From positions 1-64,000 of the IMG/VR virus record IMGVR_UViG_3300042402_002641: a stretch of 64,000 nucleotides of DNA; one strand, 5' to 3'. The stretch's first letter is position 1. Every line of letters starts with the position of its first letter. Shown in pieces: positions 12,520-51,529 of this stretch. A program made the translations under genes and the position numbers. The notes under the pieces were generated by a model that was given only the letters and a program-made list of their open reading frames with translations, made no database searches and was not told where the DNA came from.

Positions 12520-14424
12520 TTAGTCTGCTTTCTTCTCTGTGAAGGTAGCATCAACTACATCATCTTGGTCGGGCATAGGTCCTGCTTCAGCTTGTGCTGT
12601 TGCCTGATCTTTAGCCTGCTTTTTTTCCAGCAATGTTTTCATTGCCGGGAAAACTTTATTAAGCTCTTCGGTGATCTTTTCAGTGTCATCGCCTTTGGCT
12701 GCTGTTTCAACTGCAGTGATCACTGTTTCAATTTCTGTGATTTCTGCTTCTGTGAGCTCTGCACGGAATTCTTCAAGATCTTTTTTAACTTCATGTACCT
12801 GCGCCTCTGCTGAATTTCTTGCATCAATCAATTCACGTGCTTTTTTATCTGCTTCTGCATTTAATTCGGCATCTTTGATCATGTCTTGAATTTCAGCTTC
12901 TGTTAGTCCGCTGTTAGATTTAATAGTGATCTTGTTTTCTTTGCCTGTGGCTTTGTCTTTGGCAGAGATATGCATGATACCGTTGGCATCAATGTCAAAG
13001 GTAACTTCAACCTGTGGCTGTCCTCTACGTGCAGGTGCAATGCCGTCAAGTTTGAATTCGCCCAATAGCTTGTTATATTGCACAAGCTCACGTTCCCCTT
13101 GGAATACTTTGATATCTACTGCGGGTTGATTGTCTTCTGCTGTGGAGAATGTCTGCTGTCCCTTGGTTGGGATAGTTGTATTCTTTTGAATGATCTTTGA
13201 CATCACGCCACCCATGGTTTCAATGCCCAAGGAGAGTGGAGTGACGTCTAACAACAGCACGTCATTACGATCGCCACCTAGCACAGCACCTTGAATAGCA
13301 GCACCAACTGCAACGGCTTCGTCTGGGTTGACATCTTTACGTGGTGCTTTACCAAACAGTTTTTCAACTTCTTCTTGCACCTTAGGCATGCGTGTTTGAC
13401 CACCAACAAGGATAACCTCGTCGATATCTGAGGCACTTACGCCTGCATCTTTGAGAGCAATACGGCATGGCTCTAATGAGCGTGTAATCAGTTCGGCAAC
13501 TAGTTGTTCTAGTTTGCTACGACTTAATTTTATCGCCAGATGTTTTGGACCGCTGGCATCTGCTGTGACATACGGAAGATTGACGTCTGTCTGAGCTGAG
13601 CTTGATAATTCAATCTTGGCTTTTTCAGCAGCATCTTTCAAACGTTGCAGAGCCAACATGTCTTTGCTGAGATCCACTCCTTGATCTTTCTTGAACTCAT
13701 CTACCAAGAAATCCATGATGCGTTGGTCAAAGTCTTCACCACCCAAGAATGTGTCACCGTTGGTGCTTAGTACTTCGATCTGCTTGTCGCCGTCAACGTT
13801 GGCTATCTCGATGATCGAAACATCGAATGTACCGCCACCAAGGTCGTAAACAGCAATTTTCCTATCTTTCTTATCAGCTTTATCAACACCATAAGCAAGA
13901 GCTGCCGCAGTAGGCTCGTTAATAATACGGAGTACCTCCAAGCCTGCGATCTGTCCAGCATCCTTAGTAGCTTGTCTTTGGCTGTCGTTAAAGTACGCAG
14001 GCACTGTAATAACTGCTTGTGTAACTGTTGTACCAAGATAATCCTCCGCGGTCTGTTTCATTTTGCGCAGAACTTCTGCTGAAATCTGCGGTGGTGCTAA
14101 TTCTTTACCCTGTGCTCTAACCCACGCATCACCATTAGAATTTTCATAGATCTCGTAGGGCATTAGATCGAGATCTTTTTGCACTGCCTGTTCTTTGAAC
14201 TTGCGACCAATCAATCGCTTGCTGGCATAGATTGTGTTTTTGGGATTTGTTACTGCCTGACGCTTGGCTGAAGCGCCAACGATGATTTCATCTTGTGTGT
14301 AGGCCACGATTGAGGGTGTAGTTCTTGCACCTTCTGAATTTTCAATAACTTTGGATTTTCCATTCTCGATAACAGCCACGCATGAGTTGGTGGTGCCGAG
14401 GTCAATACCGATGATCTTAGACAT
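12520..14424 (-). CDS. dnaK: chaperone DnaK (Hsp70)
   Basis: [27 protein letters not shown]; full length 634 aa. Confidence 0.98.
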
Positions 14425-26538: not shown

Positions 26539-26588
26539 AATATTTCCTTTAAACTTATAATATATAGCTAAAAATTTTAGGTAATCAT

Positions 26589-26617
26589 AAAAAAAGACTA
26601 CCGAAGTAGTCTTTTTT
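26589..26617 (-). terminator. terminator of the cspA-tmRNA transcript
   Basis: aaaaaagactac-cgaa-gtagtctttttt (UUCG loop on minus strand). Confidence 0.85.
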
Positions 26618-26998
26618 GGTTGTTTTGTTTACAAGGTATTTCCTACCCCGGACCTGCTGTTTTTTAGGCAGCTAGAGCAAATCTGCTTTCATTAGCAGCA
26701 CCGCGAACGGTGTTACCAGTGAAGCTCATTGCGCTAAAGTCGAATGTATCTGCGTTTGCATTTACGAGTTTTGCTTGATTTACGGTCATCGCCTACCGTG
26801 TTGCCGTCTCTATTATCTCACCCTGTCGAAACCATGGCAGGCCCATCATAAAAGGACTAGAGCAAATACTACAGTAACAATAATAAAGCCAACTAATGTG
26901 CTATATTCGTTATCCATACTAATCTCCTTATGGTGGACCTGGCGGGAGTCGAACCCGCGTCCAGAATGCCTTCACTTTGAAGGGATTACAACAATTTC
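26618..26998 (-). ncRNA. ssrA: tmRNA, circularly permuted two-piece form: acceptor piece ~26998-26931, coding piece 26844-~26618
   Basis: T-arm GCGGG-TTCGACT-CCCGC and CAGGTCC-A-CCA lie upstream of 5' GGGCCTG..TTCGAC; 7-bp acceptor stem with G3:U70; tag ORF 26759-26664 ends FALAA*. Confidence 0.92.
26846..26917 (-). CDS. 23-aa hydrophobic peptide inside the tmRNA intervening segment
   Basis: TAAGGAG RBS 6 nt upstream; MDNEYSTLVGFIIVTVVFALVLL*. Confidence 0.65.
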   Translation of the reverse strand: MDNEYSTLVGFIIVTVVFALVLL

Positions 26999-27202
26999 TT
27001 AGGCGGGCTGAATATTACTAGCCTGCTGTCCTTTCTGACCCTGAGTTACTTCAAACCTTACACTCTGTCCTTCTTGTAGGCTCTTGAAGCCACTCGAATT
27101 AATCTGTGAAAAGTGAGCAAATAAGTCTGCGCCACCATCGTCCGGAGTAATGAATCCAAAACCTTTGGCGTCGTTAAACCATTTTACTTTTCCTGTTACC
27201 AT
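26999..27202 (-). CDS. cspA: cold shock protein
   Basis: [19 protein letters not shown]. Confidence 0.96.
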
Positions 27203-33602: not shown

Positions 33603-33926
33603 TTATACGCTGAAACTGCTGCCACAGCCACAGGTGCTTTGAGCGTTGGGATTACTTATCACAAATTGACTTCCTGTCAAATCGTCTTTGTAGTCTATGC
33701 TGGCACCTTCAAGGTACTGCATACTCATAGCGTCTACCAACACTTTGAATTTTTCTAATGGGATCTCAAAATCGTCCTCATTGGTTATTTCATCAAATGT
33801 AAAGCCATAGCTAAATCCACTACACCCGCCACCTTGTACAAAGGTTCTCAGTGATAGATTAGGATTGCCTTCTTCTAAAAGTAGATCCAGGATTTTGATC
33901 TTAGCTGATTCTGTTATTGTCATCAT
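33603..33926 (-). CDS. erpA: Fe-S insertion protein ErpA
   Basis: [18 protein letters not shown]. Confidence 0.92.
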
Positions 33927-36265
33927 AGTTTACATGCCTCACAGTCTTCTTCTTCAATACTGGTTTCAACTTCACGTTCGTTGTAGAAACCGTTGTAATG
34001 TACTTCTGGTGTTGCTTCGTTGGTTGCTTTTGAACCTGCTTTGTTAATCAGGCTGTAGTAGAATGTCTTGAGTCCCCACATATGTGCCTGCATGAGATTC
34101 TTGGCGATCAGGGTTGTAGGCACTTTGCGATCTGGAAAGTGTGCTGGATTGTAGAATGTGTTGGTAGAGATTGATTGATCCACATAGGCAGCTAATACGG
34201 CTGCGGTTTTTAGATAGCCGTCACAGTCTTGTTGATCCCACATTAGTTGATACTTGTTCTTCAACCTATTGAATTCAGGAACTACCTGTGTTAATGAACC
34301 TGCCTTGGATTCTTTGGTAGATATCAAGCTCATAGGCATTTCTATTCCGTTAGTGGAATTAATAACCACCGAGCTCGACTCCACGGGAGCGATGGCCATC
34401 AGGGTGGCATTACGGACTCCGTGCTGTTTCATTTCTTGTCTAAGACTCTCCCAGTCGAGCTCAGGGGCAAAATCGGTGAGTTGGTTGACTCCTGCTGCTC
34501 GTCTTTCCCAGGGGAACTCACCTTGTCCGTATCTTGTTCTGTCTGAATCTTTGCATCTGCCTCTTTCTTTGGCCAATTCAACTGTGGATTCTGTAAGGTA
34601 AAAGGCTTGATGCTCCATCCAAACTTTAACTTCTGCCAATGCGTCGTTGTCGCCATATCTGTAGCTCCTTTTTGCATGCCAATAGGCAAGATTAGTAACA
34701 CCTATGCCCAATGGTTGGAGTTCATCATTGCTGAGTTTGCTTTGAATACTCAGGAAGTCTTGATAATCCAATATGTTACATAGGCTGCGTTGTAATATGC
34801 GACAGGCTCTACGCATGTCTTCTGGGTTACGGAACGCACCCCAGTTGATGGATCCCAGTGTGCATAACGCTATGCGTCCTTCCTCGTCGTCAAGTCTTTT
34901 AAATGAACGAGTTGGCAATAAGATCTCACAGCACAGGTTACTTTGGTAAATGGTATGATACTCCGGATCAAACGGTCCTTGATTCATAACATTATCAATA
35001 AACACCAAATAGATGCGACCCGTGTCTGTGCGCTCCTTGAGAATGCCTGATTTGAATACTTCTTCGGCACTCATTGTTTTTTTGCGTAAATCCTTACGCT
35101 TTTCATATTTTACATACAGTTGTTCAAACAGCTCTGTGTTTCTGTAAAACGCTTCATAAAGATCCGGTACTTCGTTAGGATCAAAGAAAGTTATGTTTTC
35201 TTTGTTTTTAAATCGTCTCCAGAAGAAAGCACTAAGCACAACCCCATAATCCATATGACGGACTCGGGTTTCTTCTGTTCCTTGATTGTTTTTAAGAACA
35301 ATAAGATCATCAAACTGAAGATGCCAAATAGGATAGAATACAGTAGCACTTGCATTGCGGATACCTCCTTGTGAACAACTACGTAAGTCACCAAACCATT
35401 TCTTAAGGAATGGTATCATTCCAGTATGTTGAATCTCACCGCCACGTATTGGAGCACCTAGTGAACGCAGACGACCAATTTCTAAACCAATGCCAGCACG
35501 TTTGCTGGCATACTTGGCCATCATCTCACCACTAGCAAATATACTATCCAAATTGTCGTCACTGCGGATAAGCACACAACTAGAAAACTGTTTAGTTTGA
35601 GTGCCAAGACCAGCCAGCACAGGTGTAGCAAGAGTAAATAGGCCATCTGACGCACAGTTGTAGTACTCTTTGATGTAACGCATACGGGACGATTGAGGTT
35701 CTTCCTTATGAAAGACCGTAGCGGCCGCGACCATATACCTAACCTGTGGCGTCTCATAGATCTCTTTCGTAGCGCGATTGCGTACAAGATACTTCTCAAT
35801 AAGTTGTTCAATGGCTGCATATGAGTATTGTTCATCCTTTTCGTGATCAATGAAATCATTCATGCGATTCCATTCTTCTTCGGTGTACCATTCTAATAGT
35901 TCCGCGGTGTACAGGCCCACTGAAACATTTTTCTTTACAATGTCATAGAGGTGGGGAGGATCATATTGGCCATAGACGTCTTTTCTCAACATACTGAGTC
36001 TCTGCTTGCCTGCTACAAACTGATAATTTGTATGTCCTACATCTGGATTATGTTCTATGTCTATGAGATTCACTATGGCTCTAAGGGTAGTGCCGTCGAT
36101 TTCTTCTGTGGTGATACCATCATAGAAATGCGGTTGTGCTTTGATTTCTATCATTGATTGGCTTACATCTGCTATACCTTTACAGACTTTTGCCACCTGC
36201 GCCTGCCATTTTTCTACTGCTAGTGGTTCTCTACTACCGTTTCTTTTGATAACCGTGATGCTCAT
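33923..36265 (-). CDS. nrdA: ribonucleotide reductase class Ia alpha subunit
   Basis: ATP cone, QFSSC, SNLCCEI, C-terminal CEAC. Confidence 0.97.
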
Positions 36266-39442: not shown

Positions 39443-39786
39443 CCTAGTTGTGCCAGTTGTTTTTGTAGATCAGATAATTGGGTCTGTGTTTGTTTTATTT
39501 GATCTTGAATCTGTTTTTTCTGATCCTGCCTTTCTTTGGCAGCCATAGCTGCTTGTGCAGGATCCATACCGCCACCAGCAAGTCCGCTGGCAGCTTGACC
39601 AACTGCCTGAGCACCTTTAGCAACTGCTCCGCCAACTGCTCCGCCAACTGCCTTAGCGCCTTTAAGGGCCGCACTTCCCATAGCAGCAGCACCTCGTGCA
39701 ATACCGCCCGCAACTGCGCCTATCGCAGGTAGTATTTCATCTAACTTCTGTTGTTCTTGCTCAGAAGTAATTTCATCAAGTTTCAT
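39439..39786 (-). CDS. Gly/Ala-rich hypothetical (probable internal head protein)
   Basis: MKLDEITSE..LDEILP; C-terminal coiled coil. Confidence 0.65.
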   Translation of the reverse strand: MKLDEITSEQEQQKLDEILPAIGAVAGGIARGAAAMGSAALKGAKAVGGAVGGAVAKGAQAVGQAASGLAGGGMDPAQAAMAAKERQDQKKQIQDQIKQTQTQLSDLQKQLAQLG

Positions 39787-41117
39787 TAGCCTGCTAGTAC
39801 TCTTAGTAAATTGCTGCTACGGTCAATGCTTTCACGCTGTTCGCGTCCTGCGTCACCCATACCAGCTGCTGGTTCTGCGGCAGCAAACTCATCATCACCA
39901 CCTAGTTCTTCACCACCTGCATTCATTGCATCCGGTTCAACTGGTCCCATTTCTTCTTCGCCACCCATACCTGCTGGCTCGCCGCCTAACATTTCTGCAC
40001 CCTGCTCTTCACCGGTGAGCATGCGCACACCTGTGGCTAGAGTTTCGCGTGTGGTCTTGAGATTTTCAAGAGCCTGTTGAATGGCAGGTGCTACTGAACT
40101 GATAAAGGTCTTGGCCTGTTCTTGACTCATCTCATCACGGATTGAATCACCTAATTGCAGTAGTGTGTCATTTTCCATGCCTGATAGTTCTTCAATCCAA
40201 CGGCTGACTCTGTCAACCATTGTTTTTGCTGTTACGATAGCGGAAGCCTGTTGGACTTCGCCTTCTTGTAGTCTTGTCATATCTTCTCCTGTTGTGACTG
40301 ATTCGTCTTTCTTAGCAGGTAAATTTTTGTGTTTGGTGCCTGCAAATTTTTCTAGTTCTTTGGTGCTCATCTTGGCCATTTCCGCAGCGGCACCTTTGCC
40401 TGAAGGTGTGTCACCTTTGCGTTTCGCTGCAAGAGCTATTCCAGCAGCCTGTTGTTGTGCTTTGCTCACTGCTTTTTCAGAAACTTGATCTTCATACTGA
40501 ACGCTTTCGTAGTCTTCGTCCGAACCAAATCCTGCTGATGATAGAGCATAGGCATCGTCTGTTTCGCCACCTTCATCCTCGTCGCCACCTTGGGCCAGCT
40601 CGTTGAACTCATCTTCTAGGCTTTCCATATAACGATCCATGTTGCGGAGTTCACCCCCGTCTTGATCTGCATAGGAACCATACACGTAATCTAATGCACC
40701 TTCTACATCGCCTTGACGTAATAGTTCAACGATCTTGTCCTCATCTAGCATACCGTATCCGCCGATCTCGTTCATGTCTTCGTCGAACTGTTTCATTATT
40801 TTTGCGACTTCTTCTTCAATTGATCCGGATCCTTCTGGTACAGTGGTATCAACGATATGCTCTTGACGATCCATAAGTTCTGCAACAATAGCATCGTGCA
40901 TGAACTGTGCCTTAGTCAGGGTTTCGTTTTCGATGGTTTCATTAAATCCGCTTTCTTGTCGGGCTGTGTGTATTTGGGTACGCAGTTTGTTACGTGCATC
41001 CTCTAGCTTGGGAGTATCAAAACTCTCTAGGTCTAGTTTAGTTCCGAATGTCTTGGCCAAAGATTCGTTGATGCGTTGGGCCGATCTATTGAATCTAAAA
41101 AGGTCTGTGGTTTTCAT
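39786..41117 (-). CDS. acidic prohead core/scaffold-like protein with DUF3008-like insert
   Basis: Very acidic, repeated [IL]xE sites, ends LLRVLAG; AVSKAQQQAAGIALAAKR..ELEKFAGTKHK insert. Confidence 0.55.
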   Translation of the reverse strand: MKTTDLFRFNRSAQRINESLAKTFGTKLDLESFDTPKLEDARNKLRTQIHTARQESGFNETIENETLTKAQFMHDAIVAELMDRQEHIVDTTVPEGSGSIEEEVAKIMKQFDEDMNEIGGYGMLDEDKIVELLRQGDVEGALDYVYGSYADQDGGELRNMDRYMESLEDEFNELAQGGDEDEGGETDDAYALSSAGFGSDEDYESVQYEDQVSEKAVSKAQQQAAGIALAAKRKGDTPSGKGAAAEMAKMSTKELEKFAGTKHKNLPAKKDESVTTGEDMTRLQEGEVQQASAIVTAKTMVDRVSRWIEELSGMENDTLLQLGDSIRDEMSQEQAKTFISSVAPAIQQALENLKTTRETLATGVRMLTGEEQGAEMLGGEPAGMGGEEEMGPVEPDAMNAGGEELGGDDEFAAAEPAAGMGDAGREQRESIDRSSNLLRVLAG

Positions 41118-45689: not shown

Positions 45690-46265
45690 ATGAACTTGGT
45701 TTATATACACGGTGCCAATGCCACCAGCGAAAGTTTTAATTATATCCGTAGCAAATTAGGCAACGGTATCGATATCAATTACGACAGTCGCAATGGGTTT
45801 GAAAACAATCTAGCAGACATGCAGTCAACACTACAGGGTCATAAGGATCTGGTGTTTGTTGCGCATAGTCTAGGTGGTATCTATAGCCTGCATTTGGCCA
45901 ATAGTATGCCTGAGTCTGTTAAGGGTGCTGTTACTCTAAGCACACCTTATGGTGGCGCAGAAGTTGCTGACTATGCTCAATACTTTTTGCCCTTTAGCCG
46001 TCTAATGCGCGATATTGGTCCTAGTTCGTGGGTAATGAAGCAAGCTAGCCGCATTAAGATACAGCATCCGTGGACTAACATTGTAACAGTCAAAGGACAA
46101 AGTCCGTTTATGCATGAGCCTAATGACGGTGTGGTGACTATTGCCAGTCAAAAGCATCATGAGAATATGGAATTAGTGGAGGTTGAATACAACCACTATG
46201 AAGTAGTGCTCAGTGACGAAGTGGTTGGACTTATCAAAGAACGAATAAAAAAGTTCAGAAAATAA
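45690..46265 (+). CDS. alpha/beta hydrolase (lipase/esterase)
   Basis: IHG, AHSLGG, STPYGG, NDGVV, NH. Confidence 0.88.
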   Translation: MNLVYIHGANATSESFNYIRSKLGNGIDINYDSRNGFENNLADMQSTLQGHKDLVFVAHSLGGIYSLHLANSMPESVKGAVTLSTPYGGAEVADYAQYFLPFSRLMRDIGPSSWVMKQASRIKIQHPWTNIVTVKGQSPFMHEPNDGVVTIASQKHHENMELVEVEYNHYEVVLSDEVVGLIKERIKKFRK

Positions 46266-47439: not shown

Positions 47440-48021
47440 ATGAAAAACAAACTTATACTCACAGACGCTGACGGTGTTCTACTAGATTGGGAATGGGCAT
47501 TCTCAGTTTGGATGCAAGAACGTGGTTATACACTCACAGCAGATAATAAGAAAAGCTATTATCTGCATCATCACTACAATGAGCTAGAAGAAAAAGATGC
47601 CAAAAAAGTTGTTAAGACTTTTAACGAATCGGCAGCAATTGGATTCTTACCAGCACTGCGGGATAGTGCTCACTATGTCAAACGCCTACATGAAGAACAT
47701 GGCTGTATGTTCCGTGTTATCACAAGCCTAAGTCTAGACAAGAATGCACAGAAACTGCGTGAAATGAACCTACGCAAGATATTTGGCAATGCCATCGAAA
47801 CGGTTATCTGTTTAGATACAGGCGCAAACAAAGATTCAGCATTAGAACCATATCGTGATAGCGGCCTGTGGTGGATTGAAGATAAACCAGCTAATGCTGA
47901 TGTTGGTTACACTTTAGGACTTAAATCAATTCTCATTGAACACGGACATAACATGCATCACAAATGTTCTTACCCTGTAGTCAAAAACTGGCGTGAACTC
48001 TACGATATTATTGTAGACTAA
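47440..48021 (+). CDS. HAD-family 5'-nucleotidase-like phosphatase
   Basis: DADGVLLDW, ITS, K, WIEDK. Confidence 0.85.
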   Translation: MKNKLILTDADGVLLDWEWAFSVWMQERGYTLTADNKKSYYLHHHYNELEEKDAKKVVKTFNESAAIGFLPALRDSAHYVKRLHEEHGCMFRVITSLSLDKNAQKLREMNLRKIFGNAIETVICLDTGANKDSALEPYRDSGLWWIEDKPANADVGYTLGLKSILIEHGHNMHHKCSYPVVKNWRELYDIIVD

Positions 48022-48239
48022 AGTTTCTCGCCACAATGAGGACAAGTTTGTTTGTGTTCTTCTCTACCTTGCTTTATCACTTTTTTTAACTTTCGAGCAT
48101 CACGCAAGCTACTCTTTATAGTTGATCTACATCGTTCGGATTTTGTTTTTTCTAATTCAATTTTTAGATTGTTTCTCAGTTTATGAAGTCTACCTTCAAA
48201 AATATCCAAGAAACCTGAAAGAGTTTTATTAGTAGACAT
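48018..48239 (-). CDS. small protein with C-terminal CPHC zinc knuckle
   Basis: AGGA RBS; TCPHCGEKL. Confidence 0.65.
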   Translation of the reverse strand: MSTNKTLSGFLDIFEGRLHKLRNNLKIELEKTKSERCRSTIKSSLRDARKLKKVIKQGREEHKQTCPHCGEKL

Positions 48240-48344
48240 CTGCTATTCCTTATTGAGATAAGTTTATTAGCAATATTTAAGTGATATTTGATTACACTAA
48301 GATTACAAATTCGTTAATTTTGTTAGAAAAATTAGCCAAAATAA

Positions 48345-48445
48345 AATGCTCACTTCAGGATGCCATTCCGGGGCACGACTCCCATAACATCCACGCCAGC
48401 AGCCGGCGACACCTATAGTAACGCAAACGTCCTAAGGTAGGTGTT
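48345..48445 (-). ncRNA. candidate structured ncRNA (possibly manA-like motif)
   Basis: GC-rich intergenic island with three consecutive stem domains. Confidence 0.5.
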
Positions 48446-49558
48446 CTATTCTTCCTGTTTCTCTAAGCGATAATCAGCTTCTGTGGAGTCTGGGTATCGT
48501 TGTAATACTTTGTTAAGTACATCTTGTTTGCTTTCGCCGGCGATACGAGCTGTTTTACCCGATGCTATCTGAGTAACTGCCCATGTGCCAGGAGTGGTGT
48601 CTGGGTCTGCATCAGGTTCAGCTTCTTCTTCCTCACCACTGTTGTAGCTCAAAGGAAACTTGTTCTTTAGATCTGCGACTGCTTTGGCAGGGTCGTATCC
48701 GCCACTGACAATTTCTGTAGAATTGGTTTTTAACTCCTCACCTTTGCGTTGGATAGCATCAGCGATACGTTTCATCAGGCCTGGAAACAGCTCAGCAAAC
48801 TTTTCGTCTCGGCGATTGCTTTGATTACCGTTGTTGATCTGATTGGTAGGCGCATGTATCTGCCATTTGCCCATGACATCATCTGCGTTCTGTTTGTCAA
48901 ATACTGAAATGATAGGGCCATCATCGGCATAGCGGTTAAACCAAGAAGCACCCGAACTTGATCCTGTGCAGAACGATGCATTAAATCCGTGTGCATTGTT
49001 GAAATTATAACAGGCACCGTAGTTGTAGGGCACAGTGACCAGAAAACGTTCATCGTCTATCAGCGTGGTTTCTTTCTTTTCACGTTTGTGTTTTTCAATA
49101 ACTTCTGAGTCTTTGATCCTATTCAACTCGTCACGGTACACACGATTCTGTATGATAGCCTGTATCTGGCGTAGATTTTTGAACTTGTTGAAGTCTTGGT
49201 GTGGTTCTTGCAGCTTGCCACGTATACTCAAAGCCTTCCAAGCACCCAGTGCGTCACCGCCTTCACCGTTGATGTCTTCATAGTCAGCGATGCCATTGAT
49301 GTACATGCGTGTGAGCCATTCATCAAATTTGCCATCCTGTGATATATCGCCATAGTCTGTGCTGGCCAAAGAAGCATCTAACAGCTCGCTCCAGAGCTGT
49401 AAGATCTTTTCATCGTCGGGCTTTGGTCCTAGTGCAGCTACTTTTGCCTTAGGCAGTGTACCATCGTGCCGCATGGCAATGCCCAACATCTTAATGGTCT
49501 TGGGATCTTTTAACTTAGCTGCCACATTGGCTTCGTGTATTATGTGTTTGAGTTTCAT
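48446..49558 (-). CDS. hypothetical protein (PcfJ-like WCT-type domain), probable internal head protein
   Basis: MKLKHIIHEA start; DFNKFK..SFCTG..FNRY..KWQIH. Confidence 0.6.
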   Translation of the reverse strand: MKLKHIIHEANVAAKLKDPKTIKMLGIAMRHDGTLPKAKVAALGPKPDDEKILQLWSELLDASLASTDYGDISQDGKFDEWLTRMYINGIADYEDINGEGGDALGAWKALSIRGKLQEPHQDFNKFKNLRQIQAIIQNRVYRDELNRIKDSEVIEKHKREKKETTLIDDERFLVTVPYNYGACYNFNNAHGFNASFCTGSSSGASWFNRYADDGPIISVFDKQNADDVMGKWQIHAPTNQINNGNQSNRRDEKFAELFPGLMKRIADAIQRKGEELKTNSTEIVSGGYDPAKAVADLKNKFPLSYNSGEEEEAEPDADPDTTPGTWAVTQIASGKTARIAGESKQDVLNKVLQRYPDSTEADYRLEKQEE

Positions 49559-50425: not shown

Positions 50426-50872
50426 TTAATTACACCAAGATTGTTTAGCCTCACCATAGTATTCACGAGCAAAGCCGTTGGCAATTAGAGCAGCTCTAAG
50501 ACTCTGTCCGTTGACTAGAATGTCACCGAGAACACGACCACCAAACTTGTCCCACCCGTATAGAGTTGCTTGAAACTTTCCACCTTGAGCGGCTGCGGTT
50601 GCAATTGCATTTTTAGTGAAAGCAGAGGCAGCTTCTCCTCTTTGGGCTTCCTGAGGGCATTGTGCTCTATGTCCTTTTTCCGGAGTATCGACTCCATAGA
50701 CTCGTACCGCAAGTTCTGGCTTGAGTGGCGCAGGTAGAAAGGGTGCAGCGATCACAACTGTGTCGCCGTCCGTTATTCTTAATATCTGTGCGTCATAGGT
50801 GACGCCTTTAGGAGTTTTCTGTGCAAATGCCAGTAAAGGCACTGTCAATAATAATAGTAGTAGTTTTTTCAT
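50426..50872 (-). CDS. secreted thermonuclease (SNase)
   Basis: Signal peptide; DGDT, RVYGVDTPE, DKFGGRVLG. Confidence 0.92.
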   Translation of the reverse strand: MKKLLLLLLTVPLLAFAQKTPKGVTYDAQILRITDGDTVVIAAPFLPAPLKPELAVRVYGVDTPEKGHRAQCPQEAQRGEAASAFTKNAIATAAAQGGKFQATLYGWDKFGGRVLGDILVNGQSLRAALIANGFAREYYGEAKQSWCN

Positions 50873-50893: not shown

Positions 50894-51529
50894 TTATTCG
50901 TATGTAACAGTGTCTGAGTCGCCTAGGCGCCACTTAGGATTAGTTTCTACCACCCATTTCTTTGTGGCTACCTTGAAGTCCGGATGCAGCATCTCTTGGG
51001 GATTTGAGGCAGCATCAAAGAATCTACAGCGATTGTTGGGCTGTGCAGCATACTGTCCGTTGTCTAGTTCGATAAAGTTAAAACTCTTGTGATCTTCGGG
51101 CCACTCTGAATAAGTGGTGTCTATGATGTTCATGTCAGGTGCGGCATTGTCCACTGTGAACAAGTAGTTGCCCTTGTGTAGCTGACGATCCTTGGCATAG
51201 AACTCACAGCTGAGATTGCGTAGGAATGCTTTCTGGATCACAGCAATGTCATAGCTGAAGCAGTCCCAGATCTGTAAGGTGTCAAGGCTTAGGAACTTGT
51301 CTGATTCTAGGTCAGTGTTTCTACTCACATAAGCGTGTAGGGGCAGCTTGTCATAGAGAGCACCGTATCTGGGCAAATAACTTTCTATACGAAATGCTTG
51401 ACTGCGTAGGCTTTTGATTGAAACCCAGATGCAGGGTTCATACTCACCGTGTCCTGATTTAAAATCGTATAAGAACTCTCGTCTTACAAAACAATGTATT
51501 GGAGGAAGGTTCGCTACTAAGAAGCTCAT
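50894..51529 (-). CDS. conserved phage hypothetical protein
   Basis: NLPP..WDCFS..GQYAAQPNNR. Confidence 0.75.
   Translation of the reverse strand: MSFLVANLPPIHCFVRREFLYDFKSGHGEYEPCIWVSIKSLRSQAFRIESYLPRYGALYDKLPLHAYVSRNTDLESDKFLSLDTLQIWDCFSYDIAVIQKAFLRNLSCEFYAKDRQLHKGNYLFTVDNAAPDMNIIDTTYSEWPEDHKSFNFIELDNGQYAAQPNNRCRFFDAASNPQEMLHPDFKVATKKWVVETNPKWRLGDSDTVTYE

Follow-up and report, generated by a model that had tools for sequence, protein, structure and literature searches.

A pseudoknotted RNA family of uncultured phages with antisense complementarity to 23S rRNA

The manA RNA motif (Rfam RF01745) and other cyanophage motifs are structured RNAs of aquatic T4-like phages that are found among auxiliary metabolic genes. 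The phage RNA element described here shares this setting, but it has no match to the corresponding covariance model, its architecture consists of three abutting hairpins with a loop-tail pseudoknot, it is single-copy, and its loops are antisense to 23S rRNA. Natural antisense RNAs such as CopA/CopT and RNA I/RNA II display their recognition sequences in hairpin loops closed by stems that are free to vary. The element resembles them in this respect, and in some relatives its P2 hairpin is literally the complement of a target hairpin (helix 69), which is the geometry of a kissing complex; however, the target would be rRNA rather than an mRNA or primer, the determinants sit on a pseudoknot scaffold, and no such RNA is known from a phage. 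The spliced group I introns of Coxiella burnetii 23S rDNA (Cbu_L1917 and Cbu_L1951) are tied to the same helix 69-71 region of 23S rRNA and are reported to impair the growth of Escherichia coli when expressed (PMC4990558, citing Raghavan et al. 2008). Reportedly, they act through their guide sequences. These introns are ribozymes of 250-500 nt residing in the rRNA gene itself, whereas the phage RNA is 100 nt long, lies outside any rRNA gene, and has no intron features.

The rRNA-pairing guide or chaperone RNAs of archaea and eukaryotes (box C/D, H/ACA, U3) hold short conserved segments complementary to invariant rRNA on a structured scaffold. In the phage family, two segments likewise address adjoining target stretches (B1 for 1921-1933 and the class II loop for 1929-1937). 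The element has no C/D or H/ACA boxes, bacteria lack the partner proteins, and there is no evidence for a modification role. A box H/ACA-like guide would leave two target nucleotides unpaired in a bipartite pocket and carry an ACA box 14-16 nt from it; by inspection of the alignment, P3 follows P1 directly, there is no ACA box, and approximately 7-11 target nucleotides would be left unpaired. The promoter-stem-loop (PeSL) cassettes of T4-type phages are located at gene borders of hyperplastic regions and are often followed by an early-type promoter, with flanks that are shuffled between phages, as seen here; PeSLs are simple hairpins repeated many times per genome, whereas this element is a single-copy pseudoknotted RNA with invariant loops. 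The translational operator of the T4 gene 32 mRNA leader is also a pseudoknot followed by an A/U-rich unstructured spacer and a start codon in a T4-like phage, but the genes downstream of the present element are unrelated to one another, a promoter often intervenes, and there is no sequence similarity.

The element lies on the minus strand of a 64,000-nt stretch of DNA (the window), which is part of a 280-kb IMG/VR contig of a giant uncultured phage (100% identity). An initial annotation, made from sequence alone, described a compact GC-rich intergenic RNA with several helices and an alternative pairing, starting right after a stop codon, not a simple terminator, and recalling the phage-associated manA motif. 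From 48445 to 48347, the minus strand reads AACACCUA-CCUUAGGACGUUUGCGUUACUA-UAGGUGU, then CGCCGGCUGCUGGCG, then a long hairpin GGAUGUUAU-GGGAGUCGUGCCCC-GGAAUGGCAUCC, and then UGAAGUGAGCA. Every helix that had been described is present, i.e., ACACCUA/UAGGUGU (P1), the inner hairpin (A)CG/CG(U) (P2), CGCCGG/CUGGCG (P3), GGAUGUUA/UGGCAUCC (P4) and GGG/CCC (P5), and the observation is confirmed. The features are as follows.

48347..48445, minus strand: whole RNA element (99 nt), a class I member of the family.
48446..49558, minus strand: upstream 370-aa ORF, whose TAG stop (48446-48448) abuts the element, which starts one base after it; no Pfam, PHROG or PDB relative.
48438..48444, minus strand: 5' strand of P1 (ACACCUA).
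48409..48415, minus strand: 3' strand of P1 (UAGGUGU).
48429..48437, minus strand: near-invariant loop B1 (CCUUAGGAC), displayed inside P1, exact antisense of 23S rRNA GUCCUAAGG(U).
48418..48440, minus strand: stretch that is the reverse complement of E. coli 23S rRNA about 1910-1933 (helix 69 loop and 3' strand, plus the linker to helix 70).
48421..48430, minus strand: P2 hairpin (ACG UUUG CGU), followed by the conserved UUAC.
48394..48408, minus strand: P3 hairpin, outer stem CGCC/GGCG with a 7-nt loop GGCUGCU.
48398..48403, minus strand: 5' strand of the pseudoknot (GCUGCU, inside the P3 loop).
48348..48354, minus strand: 3' strand of the pseudoknot (AGUGAGC, middle G bulged) in the 3' tail, preceded by an A-rich run.
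48358..48392, minus strand: P4 stem enclosing P5.
48370..48383, minus strand: P5 (GGG/CCC) with the class I apical loop AGUCGUGC.
48018..48239, minus strand: next ORF downstream (73 aa), 107 nt after the element, not conserved next to the element elsewhere.

On its own, the sequence does not fold better than chance (minimum free energy -36.1 kcal/mol against -33 +/- 3.4 for shuffles, z = -0.9), and the sequence alone therefore does not prove anything. Comparative evidence settles the matter. The 370-aa protein has homologues in 100 viral contig stretches, 80 of which were retrieved, and the RNA follows the homologous gene in 63 of these 80 IMG/VR loci. On an unfitted MAFFT alignment of 40 distinct copies, 89.3% of cells pair against 80.2% in shuffles, and the covariation score is 0.269 against 0.115 in shuffles (0 of 500 reach it) and at most 0.078 for slid controls. 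On 78 distinct copies, 91.6% of cells pair against 70.5% in shuffles, the score is 0.437 against 0.120, and 19 of 26 pairs change on both sides, including all 7 pairs of P1, all 7 pairs of P4, which is the most variable helix, and the outer three pairs of P3 (GCC/GGC, CGC/GCG, GAC/GUC, GGG/CCC), in which 100% of cells pair. P2 shows G-C to C-G exchanges at its third pair and is absent from short members of 73-78 nt, which present CUUAGGAC(C) as a plain hairpin loop. In total, more than 300 homologues were found in uncultured T4-like and jumbo phage contigs, whose sample names suggest lakes. The absence of homologues and covariation had been named beforehand as grounds for refutation; both are abundant.

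A covariance model built on the 40-copy alignment finds exactly one copy in the window (105.9 bits, E 1.4e-21). The next best hit, at 39646-39734 on the minus strand in an intergenic stretch after ORF 39786..41117, scores 11 bits (E 1.1) and is probably noise. The model also finds one copy per locus in sets collected by DNA pattern, and no contig carries two sites, including contigs of 84-354 kb. In one locus (L042; L numbers designate retrieved loci), the homologous 370-aa gene is followed by a divergent, structured-looking sequence (L042:4096-4260, plus strand) that keeps CCUUAGGAUCCG.. but replaces the rest; it is not detected by the model, its 8-9-mer rRNA matches are at chance level, and it may be a distant variant of the family. 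Single-base indels between copies and the stem covariation argue against the 45-aa plus-strand ORF 48281..48418. The gene-sense strand pairs better than the opposite strand (91.6% against 84.7% of cells), and the upstream ORF always runs in the same direction.

The comparison also revealed a pseudoknot that the initial annotation had missed. A metagenome scan that required only the P1 loop and the class I apical loop returned members whose P3 loop and 3' tail are both different and mutually complementary. The canonical combination is GCUGCU with AGUgAGC, the tail occurring in 259 of 266 canonical copies, and the variants, six or more types of which carry matched changes on both strands, are GCCAC with GUGGC, GCCACUA with UAGUGGC, GCCGCU with AGCGGC, GCCGUUA with UAACGGC, GGGUG with CACCC or CACUU, and CGCCUGCUG with GUGAGGA, in which G3->C is matched by C8->G. 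The invariant inner "pairs" of P3 are therefore better read as a 7-nt loop that pairs with the tail (GGCUGCU with AGUgAGC), which gives an H-type pseudoknot with P4/P5 inserted in its long loop and an A-rich strand before the second stem. The alternative pairing UUAGGA:UCCUGA proposed earlier is possible in the window, but across the family it is strong in only about a third of members (mean -3.7 kcal/mol against -1.6 for shuffled tails) and is not conserved family-wide. A tail match of AGUGAGC to 23S GCUCACU is a 7-mer at chance level and is explained by the pseudoknot.

The earlier interpretation is only partly supported: the element is a compact, conserved, structured RNA that begins at a stop codon and is not a simple terminator, whereas the resemblance to manA is not supported. 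Rfam 15 gives only the tmRNA in the window at gathering threshold, and no relevant hit at E <= 10 on either strand for this copy or two divergent relatives, to manA, to any described ribozyme class (hammerhead, twister, twister-sister, pistol, hatchet, HDV-like, hairpin) or to any other family; a weak ArcZ hit on the opposite strand of L085 (19.7 bits against a gathering score of 66) was disregarded. Membership in manA or another described riboswitch or cis-regulatory family, for which the phage auxiliary-gene setting is the only further argument, is thus refuted as far as sequence and structure models can tell. ARAGORN finds no tRNA at the locus; the only gene that it and Rfam find in the window is the tmRNA at 26573-27023 (minus strand), a permuted (two-piece type) gene best matched by the betaproteobacterial model (RF01850, 135.7 bits) with the tag peptide ANADTFDFSAMSFTGNTVRGAANESRFALAA, which hints at a betaproteobacterial host and at phage interference with translation. 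A match at 10 of 12 positions at 26945-26956 was not significant; four sites with at most 2 mismatches were found in the window where 2 are expected. A consensus scan finds no terminator-like site on the minus strand at the element, and the last helix is 10 nt from the U-rich stretch.

A new class of self-cleaving ribozyme that processes the polycistronic transcript is a further, very unlikely, possibility. The RNA is small and pseudoknotted, with highly conserved unpaired nucleotides, and lies between phage genes, which is the typical setting of twister, pistol and hatchet ribozymes. However, no known ribozyme model matches, there is only one copy per genome, and the apical loop is swapped between unrelated classes at the same locus, which is unlike a catalytic core.

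The family appears to be phage-specific and undescribed. Searches with class I and class II elements (blastn) and with the 370-aa protein (tblastn) against 50,697 phage records returned no cultured relative. In 185,579 bacterial and archaeal species genomes, the exact pattern gave 25 stretches, of which 24 are high-GC chance matches and one, a 14.6-kb MAG contig, is a true member. Several Nocardioides genomes (L205, L208, L218, L221 and L222) share a high-GC stretch that matches both DNA anchors and even ends in UGAGCA, but the model scores are only 16-21 bits, and it is presumably a conserved coding region and not a relative. A large catalogue of candidate viral RNAs assigns no function that fits, and a literature search found no paper on a phage RNA complementary to rRNA.

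The neighbors of the element are diverse, with 23 unrelated upstream and 32 unrelated downstream ORF clusters that include SNase, IscA-like, fatty-acid desaturase, acyl carrier protein, radical SAM, isocitrate lyase, PstS-like and amidotransferase-like genes, and are too diverse to inform on function. The upstream stop codon lies 0-5 nt before AACAC in most contexts; in several unrelated genes it is the UAG inside CCUUAGG, and those proteins end in ..TLP. In L004-L006, L011, L026, L050 and L056, a small ORF with a signal-peptide-like start and a Cys-rich end (..WCDP.YCC..) is inserted between the 370-aa gene and the element, and in L004-L006 and L050 its stop codon is the UAG inside the CCUUAGG loop of the element. 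In 123 of 238 related loci, the upstream ORFs have very variable lengths (70-1466 aa) but share an N-terminus of the type M..(I/L)..(L/I).E; the ORF of the window starts MKLKHIIHE/A. This resembles the capsid-targeting sequence of T4 internal head proteins, from which we infer only that they may be injected proteins.

Downstream, among 124 distinct contexts, 61 have the next ORF within 30 nt, 18 have a strong sigma-70-like promoter starting 8-18 nt after the element, and 9 have a separate canonical intrinsic terminator. Over 238 pattern-found loci, an 86-aa regulator-like protein (phrog_639 'transcriptional regulator', weak Sigma70_r3 similarity) follows in 122 and a family-B DNA polymerase, about 1.3 kb further on, in 65 (e.g., L146:644-904 and L113:3959-6622, both plus strand). 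The conserved synteny downstream of the element thus comprises a sigma-70-like promoter, the 86-aa gene and the polymerase gene. The carriers are therefore T4-like phages. Elsewhere in the window are a 634-aa DnaK (Hsp70) homologue (12520-14424, minus strand) that is 60-66% identical to bacterial-type DnaK found in phage-labelled records, and a ribonucleotide reductase large subunit (33923-36265, minus strand), an SNase-like nuclease (50426-50872, minus strand), a ferredoxin-annotated PHROG (phrog_3704; 50894-51529, minus strand) and an alpha/beta hydrolase (45690-46265, plus strand), a typical auxiliary gene load for a large aquatic phage.

The element thus sits at the border between a hypervariable region and a conserved operon with its own promoter, a pattern that fits an autonomous RNA module co-transcribed with whatever lies upstream and does not fit a regulator of a particular gene. 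A riboswitch or cis-regulatory leader is not supported, since the downstream genes form no functionally coherent set and promoters or terminators intervene in many loci. A cis-acting transcription or recombination module, i.e., a put/nut-like antiterminator RNA, an atypical terminator, or a conserved block that mediates modular shuffling like the PeSL cassettes, would agree with the position of the element, the promoters and terminators, the regulator-like and DNA polymerase genes downstream in many loci, the flanking genes that differ on both sides, and the breakpoints that fall at its edges, some ORFs ending in its UAG. We consider this unlikely, since a 100-nt pseudoknotted RNA with invariant loops is far more than a recombination block or terminator needs, the element is single-copy whereas such cassettes are repeated within a genome, half of the contexts have the next ORF within 30 nt with no promoter or terminator, and the rRNA complementarity is left unexplained.

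The conserved blocks were compared with the E. coli rrnA operon; the 23S index used here (own index) runs one ahead of the standard numbering, because the three helix 69 pseudouridine positions fall on U only after that shift. The P1 loop plus P2 (CUACCUUAGGA-CGUU..GUUAC) is the reverse complement of 23S rRNA about 1908-1933 (helix 69 and its linker to helix 70). The 12-mer CUACCUUAGGAC is exact, and the family consensus matches at 23 of 24 positions with one gap (score 36 against 19.6 +/- 2.0 in shuffles). Independent variants keep different parts of the match, e.g., L136 at 22 of 23 positions and L081 over 31 nt, with z = 5 to 7.6 against shuffles for L072, L105 and L081. B1 is invariant even in scans that did not require it, although the stems around it turn over completely, and its 10-mer antisense match within 23S 1890-1990 has p = 1e-4. 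A site acting at the DNA level, e.g., a mimic of the rDNA target of homing endonucleases or introns that insert at 23S positions around 1917-1931, appears very unlikely. The plus strand carries GTCCTAAGGTAG and, in some relatives, nearly the whole 23S 1908-1931 sequence, and this rDNA stretch is a classical homing site (I-CeuI, I-PpoI); however, RNA-type covariation with G-U pairs, strand asymmetry and a pseudoknot are not expected of a protein-recognized DNA site, and no endonuclease gene is consistently adjacent.

A scan requiring the P1 loop and the canonical P3 loop showed that the apical loop of P5 comes in classes: class I AGUCGUGC (118 distinct copies, including that of the window), class II AUUCGCUAC(C) (61), class IIb, class III ACGCCAUUC (4) and class IV. 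The class II loop UUCGCUACC is exact antisense to 23S own-index 1930-1938, the 5' strand of helix 70, which adjoins the B1 target, and the class III loop is exact antisense to 1969-1977, the 3' strand of helix 70. Both lie within 50 nt of the B1 target, and random loops reach such matches inside 23S 1890-1990 with p about 9e-4 each. L012 carries a class II loop at the same locus where its relatives carry class I. Class I, which is the commonest, and class IV have no significant rRNA partner, so that complementarity of every displayed loop does not hold for all members. Short rRNA matches can mislead: a 9-10-mer match of the P3 loop to the 16S 530 loop (CGGCUGCUGG against CCAGCAGCCG, p = 0.016) looked equally attractive, but a 10-mer match is expected about 0.4-0.8 times per element, and the loop varies freely as long as the 3' tail compensates, which refuted this idea. 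Whole elements cofolded with 23S 1890-1990 gain -14 to -19 kcal/mol over the separate folds, against -8 +/- 3 for shuffled elements.

The analysis itself establishes a large family of structured RNAs, 73 to 105 nt long, with P1-P5 and a pseudoknot, with loops displayed on covarying stems and loop sequences complementary to 23S domain IV. That the RNA is transcribed in the sense of the upstream gene, that it binds 23S rRNA, and that it acts on ribosomes are inferred from sequence and thermodynamic estimates alone. In our proposed mechanism, the pseudoknot would be a rigid scaffold for two antisense loops; B1 (plus P2) would pair with about 1908-1933 and the apical loop with the 5' strand (class II) or the 3' strand (class III) of helix 70. 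These loops would invade or kiss the helix 69-70 region of nascent 23S rRNA or free 50S subunits and remodel the helix 69-71 region that forms the central inter-subunit bridges, affecting subunit joining or assembly, and the phage RNA would thereby inhibit, capture or re-programme large subunits. Besides the Coxiella introns, a partial precedent is that antisense oligomers can derail 50S assembly (PMC12274283). We hold with a probability of about 0.9 that the relation to 23S rRNA is not chance, but only of about 0.4 that pairing with 23S rRNA is the function. P2 evolves to keep its own hairpin rather than full complementarity to helix 69, the target is largely structured in mature 50S subunits, helix 69 carries modified bases, and one gene copy would need high expression to act stoichiometrically on ribosomes.

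The likeness to 23S rRNA could instead be a relic of an rDNA fragment captured in antisense orientation, the element being a protein-binding or otherwise self-contained structured RNA (a 3'-UTR stabilizer, a processing signal, or an sRNA with a non-ribosomal target) whose loops are conserved for another partner. We regard this as somewhat less likely than pairing with 23S rRNA. The class I and class IV loops and the drift of P2 agree with it, residual similarity seems to extend 5' into the flank (e.g., L113 and L116), as expected for descent from a longer fragment, and some copies are followed by a canonical terminator, as in a 3'-end module. On the other hand, three different loops (B1, class II and class III) match three segments of one 70-nt rRNA region in an order that is permuted relative to a contiguous antisense copy, which simple descent does not explain and which argues for selection.

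The family is abundant, each scan returning at least 120 stretches, and strongly constrained, and its invariant loop is complementary to one of the most conserved and functionally central rRNA segments. Even if the rRNA likeness is only ancestral, it is a well-supported new structured RNA with a pseudoknot supported by compensatory changes and with modular loops. Phages are known to manipulate ribosomes with proteins, tRNAs and tmRNAs, but they are not known to do so with an RNA that base-pairs with rRNA. In the furthest-reaching form of our reading, which remains doubtful, a bacterial virus encodes a dedicated, pseudoknot-scaffolded, multi-loop RNA that docks onto the helix 69/helix 70 region, with interchangeable loop modules (classes II and III) addressing different strands of the same rRNA helix; it would be the first natural trans-acting anti-rRNA RNA of a phage. 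If the pairing is functional, a 100-nt RNA with a defined 70-nt target would provide a directly testable system and a natural template for anti-ribosomal antisense design, and would open a new mode of host take-over.
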